This document shows, in pieces, positions 1 to 38,900 of a DNA stretch of 64,000 nt. The first letter of the stretch is position 1, and each line of letters begins with the position of its first letter. The notes beneath the pieces were generated by a model. The model saw only the letters and a list, made by a program, of their open reading frames with translations. It searched no databases and was not told the DNA's origin. Position numbers and translations under genes: made by a program. Origin of the DNA: Oopsacas minuta (taxonomy: Eukaryota; Animalia; Porifera); the NCBI GenBank assembly GCA_024704765.1, contig JAKMXF010000111.1:1747627-1811626 (forward strand), written 5' to 3'.

Positions 1-1321
1 AGTGGATTTGAGAGGAAAATGTAAGGCAAGAATTCACACTAAAGATACAGAGATAGTAAAGCGCACGAGTGAACATACTCATGCGCCTGACGAGCAGGCA
101 ATGAGCTGCTGCGAGACGAAGCTAGGCATCAAGAGGAAAGCACAGGAGTCTCAGGATGGCGCACACCACATAGTGGGCGAGAGTTTGCAGACAGCATCAG
201 AGGGTACTGCTGCTAAACTCCCCAAACTGGACAGCCTGAAGCGGACGATACAACGCCAACGTGCTAGTGTACTTGCAGCTCCAGCACAGCCTACCACTCT
301 AGCAGAGCTAGCTCTACCAGCAGTCTACCAGTAGACAGCCAAGGGAGAACAATTCTTACTCTACGACTCTGGTGCAGACGATGTACACAGATTCCTCATC
401 TTCGCGACACAACACAACCTCGGGATGCTGCAGCGAAGTAAGATCTGGCTAGCTGATGGCACCTTCAAGACGGCACCTCCCTCTTCGCCCAGGTGTATGT
501 GGTGCATGGACTCCGTGGAGGAGATGATCCTATGAAGACCGGTCATCTGTTACCGAGCCTGTTCGTGCTACTGCTTAACAAGACGGAGGCTGCCTACCTG
601 AGGATGTGGGAACAGATCCGCCTACTGTGCCCACTTGCCCAGCCTCAACAGATGCTCCTGCACTTTGAGAAGGGCGCGATTACCAGCTTTGAGCATGTCT
701 GGCCTAACACAGTGGTGAAGTGTTGCTTCTTCCACCTCACTCAGAATATCTGGCGACACGTGCAGTCTGTAGGGCTGCAGTCTGCCTACACACATGACGA
801 AGAGTTAGCTATGCGCATCCGGAGGATACCAGCCCTTGCTTTTGCCCGACCAGCAGACGTACCCGATCTGTTTGATCAAGTGGCAATGGACCTCCCCTTA
901 CGCCTGAGATAGGCGAACTAGTCGACTACTTTGAGAGGACGTATATCGGCCGCACAGTTGCCAGCGGATACCATGTAGGGGTGAGGTACCCTATTCACCC
1001 GTGGAACAACACATCGGCACGCCGTTAGGACTCCTCCGTACAACCAACGCCGTAGAGGCATGGCACCGAAGCTTCAATGCCACTGTCGGCTGCCATCACC
1101 CCACCATATGGAAGTTCATCCTCTCCTTCAAGCGTGAGCAGGGCCTAGTGGAGGTGCGGCATACTAACTACCTTGTTGGCAAGCTGCCAACCAAGCGGAG
1201 GCGGTCCCAACAGAGTGAGGAAGCGTTGAAGACTCTAGCTCGTGAATATTGTTCTCCAGATCGTTCTAAAATGGAGTTCTTGCAGGGTGTGGCACATCAT
1301 TCCAGTCTGGGAGCCGATTAA
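1..1321 (+). pseudogene. FLYWCH + MULE DDE transposase pseudogene (left arm, copy 1)
   Basis: Joined frames give CKARIHT..EHTH (FLYWCH end), WLADGTFKTAP (D1), MLLHFEK (second Asp replaced by His at 661-663), KCCFFHL (CxxH) and RTTNAVEAWH (E). There is a nonsense TAG at 332-334 and three frameshifts near 480, 897 and 1007. Confidence 0.9.
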
Positions 1322-2690
1322 TATGTTAATCTAAAGGATTATCTCTAATCAATGTATTTGAGGATTAGATAGTACTTTGATTAACATATTAATCGGCTCC
1401 CAGACTGAAATGATGTGCTACACCCTGCAAGAACTCCATTTTAGAACGATCTGGAGAACAATATTCACGAGCTAGAGTCTTCAACGCTTCCTCACTCTGT
1501 TGGGACCGCCTCCGCTTGGTTGGCAGCTTGCCAACAAGGTAGTTAGTATGCCGCACCTCCACTAGGCCCTGCTCACGCTTGAAGGAGAGGATGAACTTCC
1601 ATATGGTGGGGTGATGGCAGCCGACAGTGGCATTGAAGCTTCGGTGCCATGCCTCTACGGCGTTGGTTGTACGGAGGAGTCCTAACGGCGTGCCGATGTG
1701 TTGTTCCACGGGTGAATAGGGTACCTCACCCCTACATGGTATCCGCTGGCAACTGTGCGGCCGATATACGTCCTCTCAAAGTAGTCGACTAGTTCGCCTA
1801 TCTCAGGCGTAAGGGGAGGTCCATTGCCACTTGATCAAACAGATCGGGTACGTCTGCTGGTCGGGCAAAAGCAAGGGCTGGTATCCTCCGGATGCGCATA
1901 GCTAACTCTTCGTCATGTGTGTAGGCAGACTGCAGCCCTACAGACTGCACGTGTCGCCAGATATTCTGAGTGAGGTGGAAGAAGCAACACTTCACCACTG
2001 TGTTAGGCCAGACATGCTCAAAGCTGGTAATCGCGCCCTTCTCAAAGTGCAGGAGCATCTGTTGAGGCTGGGCAAGTGGACACAGTAGGCGGATCTGTTC
2101 CCACATCCTCAGGTAGGCAGCCTCCGTCTTGTTAAGCAGTAGCACGAACAGGCTCGGTAACAGATGACCGGTCTTCATAGGATCATCTCCTCCACGGAGT
2201 CCATGCACCACATACACCTGGGCGAAGAGGGAGGTGCCGTCTTGAAGGTGCCATCAGCTAGCCAGATCTTACTTCGCTGCAGCATCCCGAGGTTGTGTTG
2301 TGTCGCGAAGATGAGGAATCTGTGTACATCGTCTGCACCAGAGTCGTAGAGTAAGAATTGTTCTCCCTTGGCTGTCTACTGGTAGACTGCTGGTAGAGCT
2401 AGCTCTGCTAGAGTGGTAGGCTGTGCTGGAGCTGCAAGTACACTAGCACGTTGGCGTTGTATCGTCCGCTTCAGGCTGTCCAGTTTGGGGAGTTTAGCAG
2501 CAGTACCCTCTGATGCTGTCTGCAAACTCTCGCCCACTATGTGGTGTGCGCCATCCTGAGACTCCTGTGCTTTCCTCTTGATGCCTAGCTTCGTCTCGCA
2601 GCAGCTCATTGCCTGCTCGTCAGGCACATGAGTATGTTCACTCGTGCGCTTTACTATCTCTGTATCTTTAGTGTGAATTCTTGCCTTACA
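20..2690. repeat. 2.67 kb near-perfect palindrome, axis at 1355
   Basis: ORF coordinates mirror exactly (1001+1709 = 1321+1389 = 2710). The only arm mismatches seen were 630/2080, 1291/1419, 1302/1408 and the apex. Confidence 0.97.
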
Positions 2691-2831
2691 AGTTCCCCTC
2701 TCCTAGCACTGCCAATGCACCACATCTCCAATCCTCCTCTGCATAGTATACATATAGCCTCCTTCCATCAACTTGCTGCCTCCTCTGATTGTCTTGATCA
2801 ACCTGAATGGTTGATCAGGAGGCTCTGCCAT
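1389..2831 (-). pseudogene. FLYWCH + MULE DDE transposase pseudogene (right arm, copy 1) with complete N-terminus
   Basis: Mirror of the left arm. It extends to an ATG at 2831 reading MAEPPDQPFRLIKTIRGGSKLMEGGYMYTMQRRIGDVVHWQC*ERGTCKAR (FLYWCH). It has an extra stop at 2703-2705 and the same lesions as the left arm. Confidence 0.9.
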
Positions 2832-3204
2832 TAGCAAATTAAATAATCAACAAATAATACAATAAAAACAGATAAATAACTTGTTTGAGAAACACTGATC
2901 TGAACAATGGAAGTAACCAATCGTATTTATTGAATTTTGAAGCTTATTGACTTCATAAAACAGCTGTACGATGTTTACAGAGTAAAGAATTTGATGATGA
3001 ATACTTGAGGTTACATTCCAATTTATGTATAAACATTATCAGTTGTTTCGAATTATTTGATTGAGGTAACTTCTGAAAATATACTCAATGCATTTAGACG
3101 TAATACTTTGAACGGCTTTACAAGAATCTAAACTATAACTTGGATTCTACAAGGGTAGATTTTATAATATTTAAGGGGATAATTTAATTATAAATAATAA
3201 TTAA

Positions 3205-3318
3205 AATTGACCAATCAAATAAGTAGCGATATGTCGTGTAACGAAATGTCGCTGTAGCGAAATGTCTGTAGCGAAATGTCGTGTAACGAAATGTCGTGTA
3301 GCGAGATGTCGGTATCCG
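3205..3318 (-). repeat. MULE TIR with six tandem GTA(G/A)CGA(A/T/G)ATGTC subterminal repeats
   Basis: Six 13-16 bp units run from 3223 to 3310 and end in GGTATCCG. The architecture matches the TIRs at 28795 and 33343. Confidence 0.8.
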
Positions 3319-4916
3319 ACAATAATCAGCCATCATGTTTGGAGAAACTTTCCATTGTGCTCATATCTTGATGAAATCTTTCACCAAGTTCATTACTCAC
3401 AGCACCTAGATTTTCTGGAAAAAATTGCAAAATGTGAGTGAAGAAACTGCATTTTTAGAGACATGTTACATCCCATTGTTCTGAATGCATCAAGTAGTGT
3501 CACAACAAGTTCTTCATAAATTGGTGATTTCTTAGTTCCTAAAAAGTTCTCAGTTAAAGATTTGAAAGAATTCCATGGTGCTTTCTCGACAGAATTTAGA
3601 CATGCTTCGAAGTTTAGATCCTTGAATTGTTCTCTAATTTGGGGACCTATAAATACCCCTTCCTTGATTTTAGCATCATTGACCATAGGAAATTTGTCCT
3701 TGAGGTATTTGAAATCTTCTTCTTCTTTATTGTATTTTACTATCGCCTTTACAAAGTTTTTCATCAAACCCAGTTTTATGTGCAGCGGTGGTAACAGAAT
3801 TTTCTCTAGATATACTAAAGACGGACAGCTTACACTCTTTACACCAGCAGTTAATTGATATTGTAGAGGCCACTCCTTAACTATATAGTGGGATTGCCTT
3901 GCTCTACTATCCCACTCACAGAGGAGCAACAATATCTCGTGTATCCAGGTTGCATACCCAACAAAAGTTCAATTACCTTCAGATCACCACAGATGTGCCA
4001 ATTGTAATAGTCATATCTGATCAGTTACAATAAGATATCCATATTCTCATGAGACTCCTTCATGTATACCGAATGACCTATCGGTATAGATGGTAATACA
4101 TTACCTTTATGAAGTAAGAATGCCTTGAGGCTGTGCTTAGAAGAATCAATGAAGAGACGTCACTCTGGTGGTTCGTGTTGAACACCTAAAAACTCCATCA
4201 CACAATCCACATTGTTACACTAACAAAGAAGGCCCTGCATTTCAAAATGTACAGAGAAATCACTTTGACGGGTCCTGAAAAATGAAACTTTAGTCTCCTC
4301 ATCCAATAAGTTCCAACCTTTCAATCCTAACCCAAGCAATTCACTTTGATCTTTTTGTCAAATTCAAGTCTCGAACCAAATCATTCAGCTCACTTTGATT
4401 AATGATGTGGGGAAGTCTTGTTTTATCAGGTGGCATAGGTGGAGGTATAATTTCCTCATCATCTTGATCTAACATAGCATATTCAACAGTATCGTCATCA
4501 AAGGAAACTTTCTTAAGCTTAGGTACTTCGAATTCTGTAGAATGCTAAACAGGACGAATCGCAGATTGAAGATTGGGATAACATATATTCTTTTTGGTCT
4601 TAGAAGTGATTCCTATTATATCAGTTAAACAGAAATAACAATCAATATAATGATCTCTTGGTTCCCTCCATATCATGGGAATAGCAAATTGCATTGAATT
4701 ACGTGAGCCAATTAGCCATTTACTAAGTCCTATTGCACATTTTGAGCAACAAAAATGAGGTACCCAAGGCTTATCTTGATCACAAATGTTGCAACCGAAA
4801 TATTGCTCATATCCCTTGTGTACAAGGGGAGACATGTCTCTCAGCTTAAATTTTGTAGTAAATTCTCCAAAAATATAACAGAGAGAATCGGTTGGGTTTG
4901 AACATCGACGAGACAT
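3319..4916 (-). pseudogene. Chapaev3-type transposase pseudogene
   Basis: Motifs CYIFG..YFG..DQDKPWVPHFCCSKC, WREPRDHYIDCYFC, ICGDLKV..LLGMQPGY..C..CEWDSRA, LLPPLHIKLGLMKNFVKA, MSLKMQFLHSH, FPENLGAVSNELGERFHQD and MMADYC (cut at 3319). Multiple frameshifts. Confidence 0.85.
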
Positions 4917-5219
4917 TACTGAAAAGGAATAAATACAAATACAATCAGATAATCTCCTCTTGAAAGAGCAAATAATATTCTATATATTTTAAGAAAATTT
5001 GAATTGTTAGACAATATATACGGAAGGTAATAATACATATACAATTACAAATTCTATCGAGACCTATGGAAACATGATTTTGGAAATTTCCGAATTTTAC
5101 AAAATCTCTGCCTGATAGAGAAAAGCTGATTGGATATTTGGAATCAGGGTACTTAAATACATAAGAAACACTACCGTATATTCCAGAAGCAAAAACTGAT
5201 GAAAATTTGTTGGACAGTG
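3319..5219 (-). mobile_element. Chapaev3 (CMC superfamily) DNA transposon, interrupted at its 3' end by MULE copy 1
   Basis: Terminus CACTGTCCAACAAATTTT (minus strand, 5219) is flanked by TAA, consistent with a TWA target site. The transposase pseudogene lies inside. Confidence 0.8.
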
Positions 5220-5344
5220 TAATCTAGTTGGTAAATATATAATCAGAACTCGAAAATTTTGGTATAGGCTCAATCTAATTTCGCTGCGATACGTCTGAAC
5301 AGATGATTAGGTTGTTTTTAATAAACATTTATTGAACATAATTA

Positions 5345-6671: not shown

Positions 6672-7064
6672 TAATATAATACTCTAATCTATAATATTTG
6701 ATAGACATGTTCATTTAGAAATCTACCTTTAAACACATACTACAAAGAAGTAAACACAGAACTAACTGAGTATTATTAGTACAACCACGAGACATCCATA
6801 GGAAAACAAAATCTAGGTCCACTTTCTCAATTTAACAATAATTTTCTATAAATGTGAAAGCCAATGCCATGTGACATATGGGGAAATAAATGGAGAATCA
6901 ATATTAATTATAGTCCTAATTGGCAGAATTTGTATCCATTCTATTCCAACATTTCTCAAGAAATGTGTCGATATCACAATTAAGAACAGCATTACACACA
7001 TTATGAATTAATGCCCATCTGAGATCTATCTGAAATTGTCCTTTGTTAATATTATAACCTAATA

Positions 7065-7240
7065 CGGTAGAGTCTCCTTAATACGATCACGATTAAGGCG
7101 TAACTCCGGATAAGGAGTTTATACACTTTATCAGTCCCCTTCAATGCCTTTTCAATGTAAATCTGTTCGGATAATAAGGACTCGGGTAAGGAGTACGAAA
7201 TTTGGCAGTCCCCTTCTGTACGTATTAATTGAGTCTACTC
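7065..7240. mobile_element. Small pogo/Tigger-like MITE
   Basis: Imperfect TIRs CGGTAGAGTCTCCTTAATACG / CGTATTAATTGAGTCTACTC, each flanked by TA. Confidence 0.55.
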
Positions 7241-10200
7241 TATATTATTTGCACCAAGACGCCATTTGTGTATAAAATAATTAATTTCAGCGCTACTATG
7301 ACGAGAACTGATCATTTCTGCAAGGGGTAGGGGACTGGTAGATAAGTTGGATGTTGTACTGTGAGGAAATAATATGATACTTTGTCCTGGGAAGGTTCAA
7401 TCTTTCGAATGATTGGGCCAGTAGCATCTGGGTGAAGAATAATGCTTTAAAATAATTGAACAATTTAATTAAGCCTTCAGTATATATAAGTGAATAATAA
7501 GGGGTTATGTCCTAATGACTGAATATACCCTCTAAAATAACTACCCACTAAAGAATTCCGATAATACTGTTGCAAACTAATAACTACAATTATCATTAGA
7601 GTACATCTGTAAACCTGACAAATCAAATCTTTCATTCCTTAATACAGCAGCGCTTTCAATGGCTTGTTTCGATTAGTGAATTTAAGCGATGAAATCCATT
7701 TCCACTTTGTTCAAAACGAAAGAAGCATTTCCAAACAAATGCAAAATTCCACAGTTGATGTTGCCAACAAATTTCCATGCTAATGAACATTTAACTCTTC
7801 ACAAGACTTAAGTTTATTTAGTTGCTCAAGAATACACTTATGAAATTTTTGCACTCCTCATTTAACAACCAATTGATAAGCATGAAATGCCACTAATGCG
7901 TGGACATTCTGAAGCCAAAAAATTTTAGTGTGTTTAACCATGGAAGATTATCACAATTATGTATGTCCAAGAGGAGGAGAAAAGGCCAGGGTATATCTCA
8001 AACTATCTAGTTCAGGGTTTTCGCAACCAGATACCAATAGGCTAAATATATGCAATTTGGCACTTCCCGCTACAAACTTCCCATACTAAAATCTGTATCT
8101 AATTGACTACTAATATTACTATGATCTAAACTATTAACGTAAATATTATGTGAATCTAACCCGGTACTAACTTGTTCTACAACCAATTAGAACATATAAC
8201 TACCGGAATCGCTGTTCAACTTATTGCTGTTAAATTCTATACTTGATTCACCTAATCCTGAAAATGGATGCGGTTTACTTTCCAATTTAAGTAGAGAGAA
8301 GCACGTGTGTTTGGTTAATTCATAATGAATATGAGAATAACTTTCCCCATACTGACATTGCCCTCGCCAGTATCAGTTATCCAAGGCTACCTTAAGTTTA
8401 TCAAAATCATTGTAACCGAGTTGGGTAATTGCAGTCAGTAAATTTGCATAAAATTTTTAAGTAATCAATATATAGCTATAAAGCATTTAAATCATCTAGC
8501 ACAAATTGGTCTTAAAGGTAATTCCTATGTAAAATTCGGGCGTATTTCAAAAATAAGAATTTTAATTTATAATTGGATACAGAAAATGTAGAAAGTGAGA
8601 TGTAAACATGATTAAAAGGATAATTGTTGTCACAATTATTTCAGGAGAAATTAATAGAAAACATCAGCCAAAAATATAATGTAAAATTGCTAACTGATCA
8701 TGAAGAATTTCGTGACTATAAGTGATGATATGAAATGTACCAACTTTCTTCTCTACACTAGTGGTTATTTTAAAATAGAACCCATACAATTGAGTAAAGG
8801 TGCTTCAGTAGGGATTTGATTCCACTACTGAATCCGCTGCTAAATTAACACTCATAATGAATTCTACAATTTGGAGAAAAGGACGTACCAACCGAAAGTA
8901 CGTTTAGCAGAGCATATACAAGGCCGGTTCAACTATATCTAAATTCGTATGCAATTAGCTCGACTAGAAAACTTTCCAAAATATGATTCAGAAACTGATA
9001 CGTATAAGATTAATGAAATATTTTCTCATATTATTGCTAAGAAACATACATGCACGCAAATATTCAACATCAAAGTACAGTAGGACGTGTATTTAAACCA
9101 AGAGCACACAATCTTACCATGGATTGGTATTAAAAATACACCAATATTCAAAGGTTTTATTAGTCCAGAGGTCTCACCAAAAGTTCTCTTTCAGGAAAGC
9201 TGGGCTAGAATCCTTATCTCCATCAAAATTGGCGACGTAATGATTGGGTACTATGCCAGATTCTCCAGTCCGCTGATTCTTACACTCAACCCACAAATCA
9301 GTGTGTAGTTTTATTAGAATAAGATCATCTCCTGCAAGGAGTTCTATCTCATCTCTATGACGTGGAATGAATCTAACATTAAATCATACAATATAATCAT
9401 AATAAATCAAGGATAAGTCCGCAAACTACTAAGGATAAGTATTACTTCGGATTATTTCCTACCAAATATCTGAACAAACATTAATAACAGATACAGTAAC
9501 CATACGAAAGTATCTGGGTACTATTAAAATGACACAACCTCTTTGAGCGTGTTTGATCGGAAATTTTCAGTTGATGTTGAATGATTCAGATTATAAAATG
9601 AGCTAAGTAAATATTGGGCATGTGACCAAATATCCAGTTGTTAAGTGAAATTGACTGCATCCTATTAATCTTCATATATGGTAAAGAAATTTGAGGGCTG
9701 TATCAACTTAATTTAAGTAGACAAAACAACTACTTTTGTCTATCAACTCATTCAACTGATTCAAAGATGAGCCGATAATTTTTAGAGTCAAAAGTCAAAC
9801 TGATAATAATGAGCTTAATACAACATAACTGATTTATTGAAATCACGATTTAGGCAAAATATACTGGTATGTGGGGCCACAACCCACTTCAAATTTTTGG
9901 ACCTAAGTAAGCTAAGCAAGCCAAAAATTTCTAGGATGTACGACCCGAGATCTAGAATAGTTTTGTAAATACGGAATAATACTAGATAATATTTGCATAA
10001 AACTATTTCAGCAATTAAGAGAGGAAGAAACTATATCCATCATATTATAAATCAATTCTTTTTGTTTATTGATATTTGTCTAGTTGTCAGTTCTATTTGT
10101 CCGTTGGCAAGGAATAATATTATTGTATGCGAAACTCAAATTAATACTCAAATCCGAGATATCAGGTTGGCAGCCCTGAGATCATACAATATTTATATAA

Positions 10201-22355: not shown

Positions 22356-25300
22356 TGTTTTGACGAAAATGATCCCCCTATTGTGCAATAAATTTCTGTT
22401 ATATCATTGTGGTATGAAATCATATAATGCTATTCATTATAATCGTGATACGACACAATCGGTGATGTTTCTATTTAATGAATAATACACAAATATTAAA
22501 CGTTTAGGAATTATTTTTTGTAATTTTTGTAAGAAATAATTGATATTATTTACGCGGCCTATAAAGTTAGTTTAATTTCGGCTTTCCATCCCATCATAAG
22601 AGTACCAAATACCATTATATTTAACTCTCATAGAAAAATGTATGCCCATAGAGATAGTAAAGGCAATCAGCGAGTAGTGCAACAATTCATCTCTGTGTGG
22701 TACTGACATTGTGTCGTTGATATCGCATACGCGGACATTTTGAATCAGATGACCAACCTCGAGAATGAACATGGGTGATTTTTCTGTGAATTCATTTGAT
22801 AACAATTCAATGATGGCACCTGAATCTCGACATTTTAAGCAAGAATGACAAGAAGAATTTGATTGTAAATGGAAGTTTGACAATCAGAGGCAAACTTTGT
22901 CAGACAAGCGAGATTAACTTGTTTTTCAGACTGGAAACAGCAGCTCCAGCACTGAAAGGTTATAATGTACTTATCTGAACATATAGATAGACCCTTGCAC
23001 AAGAGCTGAATTACTTGTCCCTCGTAGCCCAAGAGGTTAAACTGCGAATTCACGAGTGGTATCCCGAGCATTTGAGAAATCTCGAATCTGACTTGATCAA
23101 ATTGACGTCTGTGAATTAGTGATAGAAATTATTCGAGATTCGAATTGGGAGAGGATTGTATGAGGTTGAAAGTTGTGGAAAGCGCATCTCTATGTAAGCT
23201 AAGTAATGTAACGAAGTTATCCATAGGGCATGTATTAACTAATTCAATTCCATGAACATAGCCACCCCAAGTAACACACAAATCTTCAAGGGATTGGTCT
23301 GATAGAAAATGTGCTTGTAACGAGAGTTGAGGCACGGATAACTCCTTTTCAGATTTAGGACTATTTATCATCATCACAGACAAAACCGGATATAGGACCT
23401 TTGTAATATAATCCATGCTTTTTTGTTGCCCCTTTGTGGATAACTCAAAGTCTTCTTTTGTATATTGGAGTATAGGTATTTTGGTTTCAAAACTTTCTAA
23501 GTACCATTGAATTAATATTTCAGTAACTTCGTGACTTGTGTCTAAAGTCATCAATCTAGTTTCAGGAATCTTAGTAGAAGGAAAATGTTCTTGGCTCCAT
23601 TCGAGTAAATTCTTAAAGGAAAAATTCTGTCTTTTCTCAAGTTCTCGATGGAAATCGTTAAGTGGGCTATTCGTCTTAATGGATTCTATTATGCGATCTT
23701 TCATTGAATTGAGAAATTCGAATACTTCTTCTCGTGATTTTCGTATGACATTGGCTTCAAACGTTGACTCTTCAGCCCCAGTAAAAGGAGACGAAGGAAT
23801 CATAAGATCTTCATCTGATATTTCATGTTGGATATTATTCTCATCACTTTGGCTGTCTAAATGACCCTTGTTTGGTAGCGCATGTATGGCTTTTTTGGGG
23901 ATTTTGTAAAGTTTGACTTTTGATCTCTTCACACATCTAGTAGCTTTATTTCGGAGAATCTGAACTGTACTACGATTCACTTTAGTCACAGGGTATCGAC
24001 CAATCCATTTATCCAGCAACTTTCCGCCCTTTTTACTTCGATAAACATTCTCAATCAATACATTATCCCCTATCTCAAGTTTCCTGGATGAAACTGGGTT
24101 CAATTTCTTGTCAAACTGCTGCTTTATCAGGTTTTGTGAATGTAATAGCTGTTCTCCAGCTATTTGACTATTCGACTCATGGGCTTCTTGCATGAAATCT
24201 ATCAATTTTTCAAACTGGTGCTCTCCACCCCACTGATCTAGGATACTGTCTTCTGGATGCTGATAGTCCTGGTTTTGTGCTTCGGTAGGGAGTCGAGCTT
24301 TTCGAGATCCATGTATCAACTCAAAAGCTGAGAAATTTGTTGTTGCCCTTTGTCTAATATTGATAGAGAATGTAATCTCTTCTAGGAAAAGTGACCAGTT
24401 TTCATTCTTTTCTTCTAACGATTTAACTAGAGCCTGTTTGATAGCTTTATGAGACGATTCAACTAACTCATTAGTCTACGGATGGTAAGGAGTAGAAAAG
24501 ATTAGCTTGGTATTATAAGTTTCATGCAATGCGCGACAAATATTATTCTTGAATTCAGTTCCGTTATCTGTAATTATTCGAACGGGGGCTCCCTGTCTAC
24601 AATATATCGAGTGGATTCCCCTTGCAACTTCCGTGGCTTCTTTAGATTTGAGTGGACGGGTTTCTATCCACCTGGTGAAATGATCAATCATGCTCAAAAT
24701 ATGTTTGTAGCCATTTGATTCGATAAGCGGACCTGTTAGGTCCATTCCTACACGATACCATACTTTTGTAATGATTGGCAAAGGTTTCAGAGGAGTAGTA
24801 GGACTGTTTAAGCTTGATTGGTTCTTTTGACAGCGAACACATGTAGTGACATAATTTTCAATATCTTTGTACATACTGGGCCAATAGTATCGGCCTTTTG
24901 CTATATTACATGTGTATCTAGCACATTGGTGCCCAGAATTATCATAAATCTCTTTGAGAATTCCCTCCAACTCATTGTGTCTGATAACCAATAACTGACA
25001 TCCTTCTAAGGATCTGAAAAGTTTTCCTGCCACTAATTCGTACCTCTTAGCTTTCTTGCGAATGATTCTCTTCTGTTCCTTAGTAGAATGTAGAGGGTAT
25101 GATTTTGAATCTAGATAATTTGAAATTGCTTCGTACTCAATAGAGTCCATACTGCTGTGTAGAGGAATTCTATTTTATTTTTCACTGTTTTTGAGCTACT
25201 GACAAAGCTTTTATGCTTCTGTAAACCACTACAATATACTTACTCACCACTACACAAATATAACCATCGCAGGCCCTATATTATTCATTAAATAGAAACA

Positions 25301-25410
25301 TCACCGATTGTGTCGTATCACGATTATAATGAATAGCATTATATGATTTCATACCACAATGATATAACAGAAATTTATTGCACAATAGGGGGATCATTTT
25401 CGTCAAAACA
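22356..25410 (-). mobile_element. Ginger (Ginger1-like) DNA transposon
   Basis: 132-bp TIRs (22356-22487 / 25279-25410) with TGT...ACA ends and a 4-bp TSD GTGG on both sides. It encodes a Gypsy-like integrase with no RT or gag. Confidence 0.92.
22572..25150 (-). pseudogene. Ginger integrase-like transposase with a long C-terminal extension (putative USP-like protease)
   Basis: ORFs 25150-24476, 24319-23129 and 23071-22835 are in one frame, split by single stops at 24476 and 23129; one frameshift lies near 22880. Motifs: H2C2 finger (SGHQ..YYW..CVRC), VGMDLTGP, IITDNGTEF, E at 35-residue spacing (TNELVE) and a GPY/F-like module KLLDKWIGRY. Confidence 0.88.
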
Positions 25411-28400: not shown

Positions 28401-29214
28401 CTATTTGAGGCACTAAGTTGTCGAGCCAAAGAATCAATTATAACCGAAATTAGCAATGACACAATTATATCACTGGATTTATTCTTTGTTTTTGTTGAAT
28501 TATGATATTTGAATTGCTTTCTTGATTACTTATAGATAAATACTAGCACCCTTCGCTTGCTAGATCGCTTGCACTACAACTTTGTTCCTTCAATTTAATT
28601 AACGTATGAAACAACAAATTTCTCAGTGCTTTTAGCAGCTACGCAACTGGATATACAGGGTATCTAATAAGTTCTGTTATACATTTTCGCGCCTTAGAGA
28701 GTAGCTATTACTATACTTCTGAAGTAATCTTCTAGATTTTCTTGTAGCATTTTTGGCGCTCTTTCGAATTATACCAAGTATATATCATTCAAGTCGGATA
28801 TCGACAATTCACACCGCGACAATTCGCACCACCGACAATTCGCAACTAATTTGATTGGCCAATTTGATATGATATTAGTTAATTAATTTGATCTAAGTAC
28901 ACGTAAATAATCAATTTTCTAATAATTATATCTGCACACGGAAAGTCCTAATTGGATAGATAATTCTAATTATGATTCCATGAATCCATTTAAGGATATG
29001 AATTCCAAAGATTGCTATAGTAAGTATTAAGTAAACACACACGAAGTAAATACTCTTAGGGCTGTATTTGGTAAAGAGGAATGTAGTAAACAGGATGTGA
29101 TCACCTGTGATATTTGCAATCCTCGGACATAAATAGAAATGACCTAGTTCTAACTCAGATTTGCTTTCTCATTAACAATCATTACATTTTCTCTTTGAAA
29201 TTATAACTTTACTA

Positions 29215-30659
29215 ATAGCGGAACCTCTTGATCATCCGACCTTTAGGCTGATCAAGTCACAAAGAGGAGGAGACAAGCTGTCCGAGGATGGATATGTATT
29301 TGGAGTGCAGAGGAGAGTTGGAGAAGGGCGGATTGGTTGTGTGAGCAAAGAGGGGTCTGCAAAGCTAGAGTTCATACCAAAGGGATGGTGATAGTCAAGC
29401 GCACGAATGAGCACACCCATGGACCTGAAGAGCAGGCAGCGGACTGCTATGAAGCGAAGGCAGGCATGAAGAGGAAAGCACGGGAGTCCCAGGATAGCAC
29501 ACACCACATAGTGGGTGAGAGTTTGCAAACAGCATCAGAGGATACTGCTGCTAAACTCCCCAAACTGGACAGCCTGAAGCGGACGATACAACGCCAACGT
29601 GCTAGTGTACTTGCAGCTCCAGCACAGCCTACCACTCTAGCAGAGCTAGCTCTACCAGCAGTCTACCAGCAGACAGCCAAGGGAGAACAGTTCTTACTCT
29701 ACGACTCTGGTGCAGACGATGTACACAGATTCCTCATCTTCGCGACACAACACAACCTCGGGATGCTGCAGCGAAGTAAGATCTGGCTAGCTGATGGCAC
29801 CTTCAAGACGGCACCTCCCTCTTCGCCCAGGTGTATGTGGTGCATGGACTCCGTGGAGGAGATGATCCTATGAAGACCGGTCATCTGTTACCGAGCCTGT
29901 TCGTGCTACTGCTTAACAAGACGGAGGCTGCCTACCTGAGGATGTGGGAACAGATCCGCCTACTGTGCCCACTTGCCCAGCCTCAACAGATGCTCCTGCA
30001 CTTTGAGAAGGGCGCGATTACCAGCTTTGAGCATGTCTGGCCTAACACAGTGGTGAAGTGTTGCTTCTTCCACCTCACTCAGAATATCTGGCGACACGTG
30101 CAGTCTGTAGGGCTGCAGTCTGCCTACACACATGACGAAGAGTTAGCTATGCGCATCCGGAGGATACCAGCCCTTGCTTTTGCCCGACCAGCAGACGTAC
30201 CCGATCTGTTTGATCAAGTGGCAATGGACCTCCCCTTACGCCTGAGATAGGCGAACTAGTCGACTACTTTGAGAGGACGTATATCGGCCGCACAGTTGCC
30301 AGCGGATACCATGTAGCGGTGAGGTACCCTATTCACCCGTGGAACAACACATCGGCACGCCGTTAGGACTCCTCCGTACAACCAACGCCGTAGAGGCATG
30401 GCACCGAAGCTTCAATGCCACTGTCGGCTGCCATCACCCCACCATATGGAAGTTCATCCTCTCCTTCAAGCGTGAGCAGGGCCTAGTGGAGGTGCGGCAT
30501 ACTAACTACCTTGTTGGCAAGCTGCCAACCAAGCGGAGGCGGTCCCAACAGAGTGAGGAAGCGTTGAAGACTCTAGCTCGTGAATATTGTTCTCCAGATC
30601 GTTCTAAAATGGAGTTCTTGCAGGGTGTGGCACATCATTCCAGTCTGGGAGCCGATTAA
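29215..30659 (+). pseudogene. FLYWCH + MULE transposase pseudogene (left arm, copy 2)
   Basis: Starts at ATA (probable former ATG) AEPLDHPTFRLIKSQRGGDKLSEDGYVF, with a 1-bp deletion near 29325. It has the same three frameshifts and Asp-to-His change as copy 1. Confidence 0.9.
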
Positions 30660-32059
30660 TATGTTAATCTAAAGGATTATCTCTAATCAATGTATTTGAG
30701 GATTAGATAGTACTTTGATTAACATATTAATCGGCTCCCAGACTGAAATGATGTGCTACACCCTGCAAGAACTCCATTTTAGAACGATCTGGAGAACAAT
30801 ATTCACGAGCTAGAGTCTTCAACGCTTCCTCACTCTGTTGGGACCGCCTCCGCTTGGTTGGCAGCTTGCCAACAAGGTAGTTAGTATGCCGCACCTCCAC
30901 TAGGCCCTGCTCACGCTTGAAGGAGAGGATGAACTTCCATATGGTGGGGTGATGGCAGCCGACAGTGGCATTGAAGCTTCGGTGCCATGCCTCTACGGCG
31001 TTGGTTGTACGGAGGAGTCCTAACGGCGTGCCGATGTGTTGTTCCACGGGTGAATAGGGTACCTCACCCCTACATGGTATCCGCTGGCAACTGTGCGGCC
31101 GATATACGTCCTCTCAAAGTAGTCGACTAGTTCGCCTATCTCAGGCGTAAGGGGAGGTCCATTGCCACTTGATCAAACAGATCGGGTACGTCTGCTGGTC
31201 GGGCAAAAGCAAGGGCTGGTATCCTCCGGATGCGCATAGCTAACTCTTCGTCATGTGTGTAGGCAGACTGCAGCCCTACAGACTGCACGTGTCGCCAGAT
31301 ATTCTGAGTGAGGTGGAAGAAGCAACACTTCACCACTGTGTTAGGCCAGACATGCTCAAAGCTGGTAATCGCGCCCTTCTCAAAGTGCAGGAGCATCTGT
31401 TGAGGCTGGGCAAGTGGGCACAGTAGGCGGATCTGTTCCCACATCCTCAGGTAGGCAGCCTCCGTCTTGTTAAGCAGTAGCACGAACAGGCTCGGTAACA
31501 GATGACCGGTCTTCATAGGATCATCTCCTCCACGGAGTCCATGCACCACATACACCTGGGCGAAGAGGGAGGTGCCGTCTTGAAGGTGCCATCAGCTAGC
31601 CAGATCTTACTTCGCTGCAGCATCCCGAGGTTGTGTTGTGTCGCGAAGATGAGGAATCTGTGTACATCGTCTGCACCAGAGTCGTAGAGTAAGAACTGTT
31701 CTCCCTTGGCTGTCTGCTGGTAGACTGCTGGTAGAGCTAGCTCTGCTAGAGTGGTAGGCTGTGCTGGAGCTGCAAGTACACTAGCACGTTGGCGTTGTAT
31801 CGTCCGCTTCAGGCTGTCCAGTTTGGGGAGTTTAGCAGCAGTATCCTCTGATGCTGTTTGCAAACTCTCACCCACTATGTGGTGTGTGCTATCCTGGGAC
31901 TCCCGTGCTTTCCTCTTCATGCCTGCCTTCGCTTCATAGCAGTCCGCTGCCTGCTCTTCAGGTCCATGGGTGTGCTCATTCGTGCGCTTGACTATCACCA
32001 TCCCTTTGGTATGAACTCTAGCTTTGCAGACCCCTCTTTGCTCACACAACCAATCCGCC
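29327..32059. repeat. 2.73 kb near-perfect palindrome, axis at 30693
   Basis: 30339+31047 = 30659+30727 = 61386. The apex is identical to that of copy 1 (offset 29338). Confidence 0.97.
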
Positions 32060-32066
32060 ACATCTC
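30727..32066 (-). pseudogene. FLYWCH + MULE transposase pseudogene (right arm, copy 2), 5'-truncated
   Basis: Mirror of the left arm. Homology stops at about 32066 (..DVADWLCEQRGVCKAR). Confidence 0.9.
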
Positions 32067-32498
32067 TTTCTCTTCTCACTCCACTCCTCTTCCCTCCTCT
32101 ATCATCTCCATTGAAGTGCAGCTATCATGGAAGAAGAACACTGGTTATGATGCGGTAGTGCACTTCTCTTGATCTTTCTCCTACAACTCTCTTATATATA
32201 TTATTTTAGTTTATCATAATTATTTATTCTCTATTTTTATTATATTTATCATTATTTTTATCATTATTTTATGCAATTAGTTTGTAGACACATGCATATT
32301 AGGCATTAAATATAGTTTATTTATGACTTGACTTGATTCATCTGACTTGTTATCGAATAGAAACCTAAGGGTTAATTTCCTGGCACGAACGGGGTGGTTC
32401 AAACTTCACGTGACACTTAATACCTGAATTGGATATCCTACTGGCAAGTATTCTCATGTCCCCATTTTGTAGGATAATTGTGTAGGGGTATAACTGAC

Positions 32499-32552
32499 AC
32501 TTCATACCACCCTATCTTTAGAAGTACTTCAAGAGATAGGGTAGTATGAAGT
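32499..32552. repeat. 54-bp hairpin
   Basis: ACTTCATACCACCCTATCT...AGATAGGGTAGTATGAAGT (one mismatch) around a central GAAGTACTTC palindrome. Confidence 0.8.
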
Positions 32553-33371
32553 TCATTTAATCATGACCTACGTGATATCATGATTACAAGTTAAAGAACA
32601 AAATATCTGTTACAGATATCATTCCGATCTATCCCAGCAAGGCCAATATTTAAAAGTGGATGACTAGTTTACTTAACCGAAACAGTACCCATCCAGAGAT
32701 TAAATTATCACTTATATTTACTGGATAAAGGTGTTGGCCAGAGTAACCGGTGGCTCTATTAAGTGGAGTCCACCGTATTATTAAAGGAATTTAAGTAGCA
32801 ATTTTGAGTTAGGCCAGCACAATGTGGGGAAATATAAGAAAGATTTTCCATAGAAGAACAGCTTCAAATTGTATTATGATAAATCCGGAATGATTTTATT
32901 TATATATTTTCCAAATGCATGGACAAACTCTTTGATTACAGATTGTGCAATCCATACTTTACTGCTCGTATAGTTCAAAAATTCAACATACACAAGTAAG
33001 CTACTCTTCCTTGCGGTACGCGGTTACGGACAGGAAGCGTCCTCATTAGGCATCTTTCGGGCGCCTAGGTTACTCCTAATCAACCGATAATTTGTGTTAT
33101 GTATTACTAAGTATCCTATGTATGTTTTGAAAGTCACTCTCTAAGTCGAATATTCACGATATGCTATTCGAACACCTGATTACCTCTGTAGCCGTTAAAA
33201 GTATACGAACTTTTGGAAATTTCTTTACTTTATGTACATAAATAACAACAAAAATTGATCATACAATGCTAAAAATCATATTCGGAATCAATTGACCAAT
33301 CAAATTACGTGCCAATTGTCGCGGTGCGAATTGTCGGTATTCCCATTCAAGTTGATGATTCCCAGAAAATC

Positions 33372-34400
33372 ATGTTAGAAGAAATTCGTTCAAAAATTGT
33401 CACTTTTCACGAATCTGGATTTAGCAATAGTGAAATTCTAAAAAGGCTAAAAAATGATAAACTCAATCCCATGTCGATCTATCACACAATAAAACGATAT
33501 ACAGAGACTGGGAGCGTGTCTAACAGGAAACGAGTTGGTCGTCCAAGATCCGCTCGCACACCAGCCCTGAAGAATAGTGTTAGATGTCGAATCCTGAGAA
33601 ATCCCCGGCGTTCAATGCGAAAAATGTCTCGTGAATTCTGTGTCAATCACGAAACGATGCGGAAATTGGTTGTAGAGGACCTAGGAATGAAGTCCTATAA
33701 GAGGAAAACGTACACCATCTTAACGACTCCATACGTCGTAAGCGACTCGAAAGATGCATACAACTAAAAGCCCGATTCGCTCCTGGGGCTGAAGATCAGA
33801 TTCTCTTCTTAGATGAGAAGCTGTTCACGGTTGAGGAGGCAAGCAATCGTCAAAACGACCGCATACTTGCTTCTCGAAGTCAGGATATCCCAGATAGCAT
33901 CAAGTACATTGATAGAGTCCAGAAGCCACTTTCTCTGATGGTATGGGCGGGAGTGTCGGCAGACTCACGGACAAACCTAATTTTTGTCCCCGAAGGAGTG
34001 AGAATAAACTCCCAGACGTACAGAGAGCTGGTCTTGGAGCCTGAAATTGCGTCTGCTGGTGAGAAGCTATTTCAAAACCATCCTTGGACTTACCAACAAG
34101 ACTCTGCGCTGCACATGCTTCAAAAGTATCCTAGGGTTGGTTCCGAGTGCAAAATATCGATTTCACAAGTAAGGATGAATGGCCACCATCAAGCCCGGAT
34201 TTAACCCACTCGACTATTTCGTTTGGGCAAACTTGGAGAACAGGTCCTGTGCGAAATCTCACAAGAGTTTGGTGTCCCTCAAAGTTAGTTTGTTGAGGGA
34301 ATGGCAGAAAATCCCACAGAAGGAGCTGCGAAAAGCTGTCCATCAGTTTCGGGGCAGACTAACGTCCGTAATTCATAAAAAGGGAGGTTATATTGAATGA
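33372..34400 (+). pseudogene. DD37D transposase pseudogene
   Basis: ATG at 33372 (MLEEIRSKIV), paired-like HTH, FLDEKLFTVE, YQQDSA and W.PSSPD.NPLDYFVW. The reconstructed spacing between the second and third Asp is 37; several frameshifts. Confidence 0.88.
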
Positions 34401-35928: not shown

Positions 35929-38900
35929 CACAGTGCCACGAAATGGCTAAAACCTGGAAGTAGGTATTAGGGTACTAGATAACGTATGAAACTATATTAT
36001 TGACATATGGGGAATCGTACCCAAGGAATCGATTGACGTAACTGGATTTTTTCTAAGTCTTTGGGTGTGAAAGTAATGACGTCATTGTCACATTCAAAAA
36101 TATTTTGATTTTTCTATCGATTTTAATTAAACCAATTTGTGAGTTATAAGTTCAGAAATTGAATGTTTTATGTTTTGATATTATTAACACTATTTAATGT
36201 ACATTTTTATAAACTTATGAGACCACATTTCTTGTTGAAATAACCTACCGTTCATTGAACTGCAAACTATAACGTATTCATAATTAGAGACTTCACCAAA
36301 ATATCTTGACAGCTCTTTAACTCAGATAGATCTGGCTCCGAATCGTTTTTGGTAATATTACGAAATGATGCTAATATTGGATCACTTTGAGAGATAAGCC
36401 TGACGAACACATCTTTAACGTTGTCCTCAAAGCTAAATTTTCTTGAGAGTCTCTCACGGTATTGCCAGACCAATTTATTGCAAGATTCAAGGCCTTCTTC
36501 AGACAAATCTTCTAAGCCAAACCCATCGTTATGATCTGCAATTATTTGTGGTGCATGGGCTAGAAGTTTATGTAAAGTTGGGGTTACATGTGCCCATGAA
36601 AAATTGATTAAAATGGATTCGTAAGTCTCTCGGCATACATTATCAAGGCCTTCAGTATCCACTTTCCTGTTGCTATTATACAATCTCAGGATAGCACTCA
36701 AATTATTAAAGATTGTAGTGGCAACTTGATGTGTCTCTTGAGGAACAACCGTCAATACCCAATAGAGAAAATCTTCCACAGTATCATCGCTACGTGTGAA
36801 GCATCTCCGAACAACATTTCCGGTTGTGGTGGTTCCTCCTTGGACTGATGGTGTGTCAATGGATATACTAAGTTTTTCTTCAATAAGGCTAGTAATAAAT
36901 TTCCTAGCCCCAAGAATTATTGGCGAAGTTGGTGACCATTGTTGAATAGCACCATACTGTAAATGGCAAATCAATAATAGGAACCAACTAAATGTTCTCA
37001 AATATGCATGTAGAGGAGAAGCTGATATGATGTCTTTTTCTGAGATCGGTTTGTGTGTTAAATTGAATCTTTGATTTGTTGGCAAAGACAAAAATACTTC
37101 CTCATCAACCTCATCAAATACATCACGTGCATCACGGATAGTCCTATTTATGGGAAAGCCATTTTGAACTATGCTAATATCGTGTATCTGTTGGAACGTA
37201 GCAGTACACATTTGACAATTAGCACCACCAGCACCGCTTAACATTTTTGCCATCTTTGTATCGAAATGAGATCATATGATCTTGACCTCTGTATTTCCAT
37301 TGTGTAAACACAAACCACTCTCTTCAATAGTTGAAGTTTCGTTATTTATTAATGAGTCCATCAAAAACTTGACACTCTCTTCATTTTCTGGAAGGGCTAA
37401 GAGGGCAACTGGTCGAGTGCAAAATGGCGAATCTGGATGATGAGGTTTCCATAGGATATGATCATTTGCATTTATGATTGCATTAACCTTGAAACCAAAT
37501 AAAATGAAGGTTTTAGTCGAGAGGTCAGGGTTAGATATAGCTTGCTGGTAAACTCGATGACGCCCAGAGCCATCTAAGCCATCGGATACTCGAACTTTCA
37601 GCGGATAGACAAGGTTATCAGGACTTAAGTTAGATACAATTCGTTCAACTGTATGGGTGAGTAGTCTGGTGTAAGAAATACCTACTCCACATGGAAATTC
37701 TCTATGAATTATACGCACCTCATCCAGCAAATTAATTTGAGCCCGATGTCTAGCTAGACTATTGTAGCCTGGTAACTTGAGATCTTCAGATAGTAACGTA
37801 CACCGAAGTTCTAAATACTTTGTTTTACCGATCTCAAGCGAATCGAAAAGAAAGGCAGATTTATCAAGTGATAATTGTGGATAGATAGAAGATGAGTTTC
37901 CCTTCTCGAGTATCTCTTTACAAATATTGGCACTATTCATGTCCTGCTCCTCATTGCAACAAAGTAGTAAGAGATAAGTTGCAAGAGTCTTTGGAGATAC
38001 ATGCTCGTTTTCAGCGACTGATTCGAGGTGAGACTTAAGAGAAGAGAGCCGATTTCTCAAACCTTTGGTGGTTAAGTCAGCGAGCGATATCTTTTTGAAA
38101 GATTAAAGTCTCTTCAAAGTTAATGGTTAATGAAGAAGAGGCACTTAACCTAGGCTTCTTTGGCAGAGGACAGAAGCACATGGAATTCCAAGTATCAAGG
38201 CCCGAATAATTATGAAAAGAGGCTCTCTCTTTTTGAATATCATTGAACTTCAGACTAAAGAAATTTTGCTGATCTCGATCAAAACCATGAGTTGAAATAA
38301 ATTGGTCTGCGATTGAACGGGTGCTAAGTAATTTATGCTCACAATAAAACTGAAAAGCTTGAAGGTTGTTCATTTTCTAGATAATTAATATATTATTTAT
38401 TAACAATATTGTAAATACAGGGCAAAAAGTAAGATTATAATTATATATGCATGTTTGTTTTATGAGCTTATAAAATACATTCTGAAATCTAAGAATTAAG
38501 GAACTTTTGACGAAACTTTTTCTCACAGTAGAAGACTGTTGATTTTTAATGGAATCTTTGTAAAAATACGTGATGAGAACATTTATTTATATTAATTACA
38601 AGCTGAATTTTGTAAACACAAGCATAAAAATGTAAATAACTTCACGTTTTGATTATATCGCTAAGCAACCATAATATTTATATAAATTTTGAAAAGATAA
38701 TTTTTAAAAATATTAGATAAATTCAAAAGTTAATGTGATTGAAACCATATTTGCGCGAATTTTAGGGAACCTGGAAATTGTTGTATTTTATAAAGAATTA
38801 AAAATGCTGTCTTATAAAACTCATGACACAACTTGACAGAACGCGACAGATGAAGTTATGAGACTTCGAAGTTGAGTGACGACAGAAATCCAACAGAAAA

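Follow-up and report, generated by a model that had tools for sequence, protein, structure and literature searches.

Two putative palindromic Mutator-like elements of Oopsacas minuta and the mirrored variation of their arms

The window analysed here, a stretch of 64,000 nucleotides from the genome of the glass sponge Oopsacas minuta, contains two palindromes. Judged from sequence, each appears to form the inside of a transposon insertion, and the two insertions are distinct members of a single Mutator-like (FLYWCH-MULE) family. The element is a MULE carrying an inverted duplicate of its own gene, autonomous now or until recently. In the account that we consider likely, the two arms of this mirrored gene undergo conversion and crossover with each other, the core is sometimes overwritten between elements, and the core of copy 1 has been replaced by that of copy 2.

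Structure and distribution of the element

The palindrome is embedded in a transposon of about 4.5 kb that ends in terminal inverted repeats and is bordered by a target-site duplication of 9 bp. The inverted duplicate comprises codons ~38-481 (~92%) of the transposase gene, placed tail to tail behind the gene, and the arms of the palindrome code for the C-terminal half of the FLYWCH finger and the MULE DDE domain. On one side of the palindrome the A flank (~530 bp) continues the transposase gene 5'-ward, and on the other lies the AT-rich B flank (~1.3 kb); both are conserved between loci and both terminate in the terminal inverted repeats. The element of copy 2 spans 28795-33343 and is bounded by the 9-bp duplication CATTCAAGT, its terminal repeats being imperfect, ~60-75 bp long, with CGACAATTC subrepeats. 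The start of the window cuts the element of copy 1, the B-side flank of which lies upstream of the window. The palindrome centres are at 1355 (copy 1) and 30693 (copy 2), and the asymmetric 41-nt spacer is the same in both copies. The features of the two copies are as follows.

10-1334, plus strand: copy 1 left arm (B side), degenerate MULE transposase reading from the outer to the inner end
10-204, plus strand: copy 1 left outer segment of subfamily II, mirrored at 2506-2700
205-2505, no strand: copy 1 core, near-identical to 29543-31843 of copy 2, with 11 variants confined to these four arms
1335-1375, no strand: copy 1 spacer, 41 nt, asymmetric, 'flop' relative to its own 5' flank
1376-2721, minus strand: copy 1 right arm (A side, the side of the 5' flank), transposase; the mirrored arm is 1376-2700 and homology extends to 2721
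2506-2700, minus strand: copy 1 right outer segment of subfamily II
2722-3322, minus strand: copy 1 A flank of subfamily II type, with codons 1 to ~38, the region 5' of them and the element end
28786-28794, no strand: copy 2 left target-site duplication CATTCAAGT
28795-29326, plus strand: copy 2 left terminal inverted repeat (~28795-28870, CGACAATTC subrepeats) and A flank
29327-30672, plus strand: copy 2 left arm (A side), C-terminal half of FLYWCH and MULE domain, frameshifted
30673-30713, no strand: copy 2 spacer, 41 nt, 'flip' relative to the A flank
30714-32059, minus strand: copy 2 right arm (B side)
32060-33343, no strand: copy 2 B flank, rich in AT and conserved among the subfamily I loci, followed by the right terminal inverted repeat (~33285-33343)
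33344-33352, no strand: copy 2 right target-site duplication CATTCAAGT

Both copies in the window contain frameshifts and copy 1 additionally a stop codon. The piece 29831-30250 matched the MULE domain PF10551 with 28.5 bits (cut-off 27.6), and both peptides quoted by a first-pass annotation of the window were correct. An intact ORF of ~480 aa with FLYWCH and MULE domains, starting ~110 bp within the A flank, is kept in some palindromic copies; in locus C188 the 480-aa ORF is intact and scored 38.9 bits for FLYWCH and 33 bits for MULE. The dN/dS between subfamilies was 0.25-0.35.

A one-arm query against the whole O. minuta assembly (61.46 Mb, 365 scaffolds) gave 66 matches; of the loci that were read, at least 16 were complete and had two arms. 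Adding convergent pairs from a MULE-domain scan brought the number of two-armed loci to ~24 genome-wide. Three subfamilies (I, II and III) make up the family. Subfamily III includes copies 99% alike that are flanked by unrelated DNA, and it has terminal repeats equivalent to those of copy 2. A target-site duplication of 9-10 bp was found at C301, while none was seen at C327_94000 or C77. The target-site duplications, together with the 99%-alike subfamily III copies in unrelated flanks, indicate that the whole unit transposes. For the annotation this means that many O. minuta 'MULE domain-containing' gene models in convergent pairs are the arms of these elements; the O. minuta genome paper makes no mention of transposable elements (PMC10280926).

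A palindrome made by a chimeric read was rejected on the basis of the identical centre at ~24 or more loci with differing flanks, and an independent origin of the palindrome in each subfamily was rejected on the basis of the spacer and centre junction, which are homologous in all three. The long inverted arms of foldback (FB-type) transposons are non-coding termini composed of subrepeats; the arms described here are internal and coding, and outside them the element continues for ~0.5 kb on one side and ~1.3 kb on the other without being palindromic, the sole exception being the derivative at C77.

Mirrored variation and recombination between the arms

The four arms in the window were compared position by position from the centres, k being the distance from the centre. 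All of the two-against-two substitutions separating the copies (41/41) were mirrored on both arms, which rules out chance as the cause. Thirty-nine of the 41 are at k=1151-1345, the outer ~195 bp, and the remaining two at k=1003 and k=1023 (A352 and T332); at k=24-1002 there was no symmetric difference, in accordance with the near-identity of the copies that the first-pass annotation had reported inside ~205-2505. The positions it had quoted, T332/A352 with complements at 2378/2358 in copy 1 and C29670/G29690 with complements at 31716/31696 in copy 2, are mirrored as described. Its observation that the distal ~185 bp diverge between the copies while matching between the arms also held, since at arm positions 31-215 from the outer end 37/185 sites (~20%) differ between the copies and the arms within a copy agree. 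Only three interior singletons were confined to one arm, at k=376 (30317/31069, copy 2), k=725 (630/2080, copy 1) and k=1271 (84/2626, copy 1). Arm-specific mismatches at k=23, 53 and 64 are common to both copies.

The claim that the arms of each palindrome co-evolve was confirmed across the family. Maximum-likelihood analysis of k=110-1330, the interior of the arms, gave a tree in which the two arms were sisters in 16/16 palindromic loci, with shared stems of up to 0.036 and tips near zero. Substitutions private to one locus comprised 156 symmetric versus 43 one-arm changes, and 25 of these 43 came from two loci: C299, which has a truncated arm and where the changes are in the divergent outer boundary of that arm, and C316, which is a mosaic. 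Private deletions were found on both arms of C199 (22 bp), C222 (9 bp) and C295 (9 bp), and 79 sites were fixed differently on both arms between seven subfamily I and five subfamily III palindromes. Mismatches between arms are concentrated in two zones, the ~110 nt nearest the centre and the outer boundary, leaving the interior clean. Loci that have lost one arm carry 5-34 private changes, similar to the palindromic loci, with the divergent outlier C305 at 72; these counts are as expected from post-insertion mutation.

Taken from the sequences, recombination between the arms would best explain their symmetry across the copies. Non-reciprocal exchange (gene conversion) would copy a new mutation from one arm to the other, so that each locus gains its own symmetric variants, and reciprocal exchange between the arms would invert the spacer relative to the flanks. 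Private symmetric variants could in part predate insertion and derive from unsampled master copies; homogenisation would still be required somewhere. The sequence patterns, the hallmarks of transposition and the mosaic structure are seen in the data themselves; the recombination mechanism is inferred, and no conversion tract was observed directly.

Several loci show further features of exchange or insertion. A 15-bp deletion at k=580-594 is present in some, not all, members of all three subfamilies (C199, C222, C295, C308, C77, one arm of C316 and others) and is mirrored in every palindromic locus but C316; it is either recurrent or was spread by exchange between elements. Locus C316 itself (L013/L021, G000 C316:258357-261070), of subfamily I, has one arm with subfamily III sequence near the centre and in patches (k=27-100, 328-415), and the other arm is as yet without a mirrored copy of this inter-subfamily mosaic. 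At L037 and L041 (G000 C327:322831-327829 and C305:205845-210615), 2.3-2.5 kb has been inserted between the arms, which are still 97-100% identical in the part that was read.

Spacer states were scored with every element oriented A flank left. Two reverse-complementary states were found, 10 'flip' versus 10 'flop' loci, and both occur in all three subfamilies.

'Flip' loci: copy 2, C307_254828, C316, C343, C177_193761, C332_1322953, C177_672000, C301, C308, C327_94000
'Flop' loci: copy 1, C188, C332_872422, C199, C295, C299, C304, C307_301401, C317, C49

Loci C304 and C307_254828 are 98% alike and have opposite spacer states, and the tree requires at least six changes of orientation. Reciprocal exchange between inverted repeats inverts the centre and has been reported for insertion sequences (PMC3004938); the presence of both orientations in every subfamily thus points to crossovers between the arms.

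In the derivative at C77 (L042:5338-9121) an inverted copy of the A flank stands in place of the entire B flank, as far as the terminal repeats. The arms of this derivative, each 1789 nt in length, are 100% complementary and separated by 206 nt, making the element palindromic to ~10 nt from its ends. This would be the product of one long conversion tract, held at one end by the arm and at the other by the homologous terminal repeat, with outward fold-back copying as the rival account.

Fold-back (snap-back) re-synthesis might more generally be the main route to symmetry: after a break, or in the course of gap repair, a nascent strand running past the centre would anneal to its own arm and copy outward, so that one arm is remade as an exact copy of the other without heteroduplex-type gene conversion. 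The restriction of mismatches to the outer boundary and to less than ~110 nt from the centre fits outward copying that starts just off the centre, and in C77 copying would have continued through the entire flank. However, C77 is equally explained by the ordinary conversion just described, and ordinary copies retain a non-palindromic B flank, so outward synthesis would need to end and be rejoined at one constant boundary each time. Inverted spacers, moreover, require crossovers, and patchy one-arm tracts with the alleles of other elements (C188 at k=145-339; C316) indicate short conversion tracts. We therefore regard fold-back copying as an unlikely main route. The first-pass annotation had named snap-back synthesis beside intrastrand gene conversion. 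A stronger form, wholesale snap-back re-synthesis from the loop at each transposition, was rejected: centre-proximal differences between arms are inherited across loci, ~25 of them, with indels, being common to at least six subfamily III loci. The annotation's suggestion of local homogenisation of the arms is upheld in so far as gene conversion is the best mechanism, but the symmetric outer segments were not made at these loci; they were inherited by transposition.

Recombination between arms has also to be set against an artefact of assembly. In a de Bruijn graph an inverted repeat is a single edge used twice, and isolated differences between arms can be popped and path choices mirrored. For O. 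minuta, Illumina reads and PacBio reads corrected with Canu were assembled by SPAdes 3.9 in careful mode (k=21-99), after which SSPACE, Pilon and GapFiller were applied (PMC10280926). Such a method is prone to collapse of this kind. Arms and both cores could have been collapsed onto one graph path and then treated by Pilon with multiply mapping reads, in which case the mirrored variants, the core, its breakpoints and the spacer orientations would all be artificial; the traversal of one edge twice would mirror any bubble collapse or path switch automatically. Hybrid SPAdes assembly with Pilon may indeed collapse arms less than ~1% apart, and exact arm identity and single mirrored SNPs were read from this consensus assembly. 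The assembler might also have picked some of the spacer orientations, or routed copy 1 through the graph path of copy 2 where the shared core is perfect.

Against an artefact as the general cause, collapse requires shared 99-mers, that is, arms ~99% alike or more, and unhomogenised arms are expected to be 2-7% apart, twice the locus-private stems of 1-3.6%. Differing arms do appear in the assembly (C316, C299 and C188, 96.5-98% alike) and at least 12 isolated one-arm SNPs have been kept in it. Bubble popping cannot yield mirrored 9-22 bp deletions or outer segments that are 20% divergent on both arms, and the related element L051, from an independent assembly, has the same arms with an identical interior. 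An artefact is thus distinctly improbable; assembly collapse cannot create the main pattern, although it could exaggerate the identity of the arms and produce single mirrored SNPs. Mirrored single SNPs such as T332 are probably not assembly products.

Outer segments, the shared core and the divergence gradient

The outer arm segments mark the subfamilies. The outer type of copy 1 was found on both arms of C188, a complete subfamily II locus; the other four loci of subfamily II (C177_193761, C296_37000 and two C332 loci) carry it on the one arm that survives. That of copy 2 was found in ~13 subfamily I loci and on both arms of subfamily I palindromes. Outer types that are already symmetric in other loci indicate that the ends of both copies were inherited in symmetric form through transposition of the whole element.

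Copy 1 appears, on its diagnostic sites, to be a chimera of subfamily II ends and the core of the neighbouring copy 2. On both arms these sites are of subfamily II at arm positions 11-202 and of subfamily I at 232-297, placing the switch between positions 202 and 232. The flanks of copy 1 are of subfamily II on both sides and, over 4.8 kb, 96% identical to C188, the homology with that locus stopping at ~3322. The 11 variants that the four arms in the window alone carry are at k=116-916, and the one-arm variants at k=53 and k=64 are on the same chromosomal side in both copies. The simplest reading is that the shared core represents one recent transfer of ~2.3 kb, with the spacer and both arms, into copy 1, the donor being copy 2, 29 kb away, or a twin element. 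Donor and recipient would have been aligned in direct chromosomal orientation, and from copy 2 to copy 1 is the probable direction. T332 is private to copy 1, creates a stop codon and lies inside the transferred core, and so arose after the transfer and was then mirrored.

In the scenario of the first-pass annotation, taken literally, a single palindromic core became attached at these two loci to 5' ends of two kinds, after which each copy was made symmetric locally. Copy 1 is truly chimeric, with a subfamily II end and a subfamily I-like core; T332 is mirrored inside the transferred core and the private mirrored variant of copy 2 (k=1151) is at the edge of the tract, all as that scenario would have it. 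Yet the same outer types are already symmetric in C188, C304, C307 and others, the subfamily II flanks on both sides of copy 1 show that the core alone moved, and the symmetry of the outer segments is inherited and old (dS ~1). In its literal form the scenario is very improbable. The idea of one core on two 5' ends does hold as regards a young shared core (dS 0.055) on old, divergent 5' modules (dS 1.0-1.4), but not as regards joining at these loci. The preferred reading is that copy 1 was a subfamily II element whose ~2.3 kb core would have been replaced by that of copy 2, a few later changes, such as T332, being mirrored again.

Divergence between subfamilies falls steeply along the gene. 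The dS was 1.0-1.4 for codons 1-105 and 0.12-0.41 for codons 106-200, and for codons 201-440 it was 0.055 between subfamilies I and II and 0.20 between either of these and III. In nearly all segments and pairs dN/dS was 0.1-0.35, and in the outer segment 0.11-0.21. Fast or adaptive protein evolution was accordingly rejected as the source of the outer divergence; a dS of ~1 with low dN/dS means that the difference is old. An outer arm segment which is old yet the same on both arms is the strongest sign of long-term homogenisation from arm to arm.

The boundary between old and young dS (~codon 105) coincides with the end of the tract transferred from copy 2 to copy 1, which suggests that tracts spanning the centre halt where homology falls to ~80%. 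Under the proposed mechanism, the core of one element would occasionally be overwritten by that of another copy, in tracts that cross the centre and end near codon 105, where homology is ~80%; the catalytic core would thereby be young and common to the subfamilies, each of which keeps old flanks and 5' DNA-binding modules of its own. The dS values are consistent with a catalytic core homogenised between lineages and with 5' modules that are old and specific to each subfamily.

GC-biased gene conversion was considered as the cause of the GC-rich arms (53% versus 35% in the flanks) and rejected, since private symmetric changes run mainly from G/C to A/T (93 versus 41 in the opposite direction) and the gene is GC-rich in other elements too. 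In L049, a relative in which no inverted repeat was detected, the gene is equally GC-rich (55% GC), and in the plain element L048 it has 47% GC versus 37% in the surroundings.

Related elements, known systems and other transposon-like features

Three elements from other assemblies (L048, L052 and L053) are plain single-gene MULEs, 1.9-2.4 kb in length, whose terminal repeats measure 63-196 bp. As FLYWCH-MULEs they resemble the O. minuta elements in having a homologous transposase, 56-65% identical, and the terminal repeats of L048 contain CGACA-type subrepeats as in O. minuta; unlike the O. minuta elements, they have one gene and no internal palindrome. A palindromic relative was found at L051:1994-8781 (ENA ERZ25766962), a MULE with convergent genes at 4001-5284 and 7006-8388 and a transposase 66% identical to that of O. 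minuta. Its arms (3990-5212 and 7030-8252, 1223 nt) differ by ten mismatches, all at the two boundaries, and are identical in the interior; the spacer is 1.8 kb long, and 1994-2084 and 8691-8781 are putative terminal repeats. The outer boundary lies at the same FLYWCH codons as in O. minuta. In a protein tree the plain elements separate L051 from the O. minuta clade, so that this tree gave no support for a single origin of the palindromic layout in the two. One old origin followed by losses, or two separate origins, are both possible.

The finding that outer segments at dS ~1 between subfamilies are identical within each element, and the occurrence in L051 of the same layout with the same FLYWCH boundary codons and a mismatch-free arm interior, would be accounted for if the inverted duplicate were no accident and selection had long maintained it in this lineage of MULEs. 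We put this forward tentatively, as a doubtful though conceivable reading. If it were true, the mirror copy could act as a built-in conversion template that slows the decay of the transposase, or could supply a self-regulating hairpin RNA.

Conversion between palindrome arms and inversion by inverted repeats are both well known, mostly from sex chromosomes, organelles and bacterial insertion sequences. Arm-to-arm gene conversion is known from the palindromes of the human Y chromosome, and flip-flop isomers from chloroplast inverted repeats and the 2-micron plasmid. In the palindromes of willow sex chromosomes (PMC7023750), as here, the arms are >99% alike while copies diverge, changes are fixed on both arms, and a small unique spacer escapes. 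The arms of sex-chromosome palindromes, however, measure tens of kb to Mb, as against 1.35 kb here, and the present palindrome, unlike those, is inside a mobile element of ~24 or more copies that also exchanges sequence with paralogues. Inversion of insertion sequences through their terminal inverted repeats (Ling and Cordaux, 2010; PMC3004938) likewise gives rise to both orientations, but in O. minuta the recombining repeats are internal and coding, consisting of the transposase gene and its copy, and the inverted segment is only the 41-nt spacer with the inner ends of the arms. In O. minuta both processes would take place within a eukaryotic DNA transposon which contains its own gene a second time in mirror image and of which there are dozens of dated copies.

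Mu killer is known as one rearranged derivative locus, by which MuDR is silenced. Like the present element, Mu killer of maize (PMC3440606) is a partial inverted duplication of a Mutator-family transposase gene with the potential for a long hairpin RNA. Here, by contrast, the inverted duplicate belongs to a transposing family with target-site duplications and sometimes an intact ORF. It is a puzzle that an element resembling a built-in Mu killer has still multiplied. The family offers a natural replicate series for the rate of conversion versus mutation in short palindromes, for the way in which conversion tracts end at homology boundaries, and for a module of DNA-binding domain and terminal repeats that is lineage-specific while the catalytic core is shared.

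Other transposon-like features were identified in the window. Adjoining the right end of copy 2, the ORF 33309-33767 encodes a Tc1/mariner-type helix-turn-helix (HTH_32, HTH_SB, PAX), and the MULE of copy 2 appears to have inserted into another DNA transposon. Perfect inverted repeats of 132 nt at 22356-22487 and 25279-25410 bound an element (22356-25410) which contains integrase zinc-binding and rve domains (24476-25150) and a 396-aa ORF (23129-24319) with no Pfam match; it looks like a Ginger-like DNA transposon. Inverted repeats of ~350 nt (53831-54184 and 56173-56525) surround a 238-aa ORF (54412-55128), also with no Pfam match, and 53831-56525 is probably another transposon. The region 36267-38060 looks like a Transib/RAG1-like element, containing a 328-aa ORF with a weak match to the RAG1 recombinase core (PF12940, E=3.7e-4) and a neighbouring 262-aa ORF without a match.
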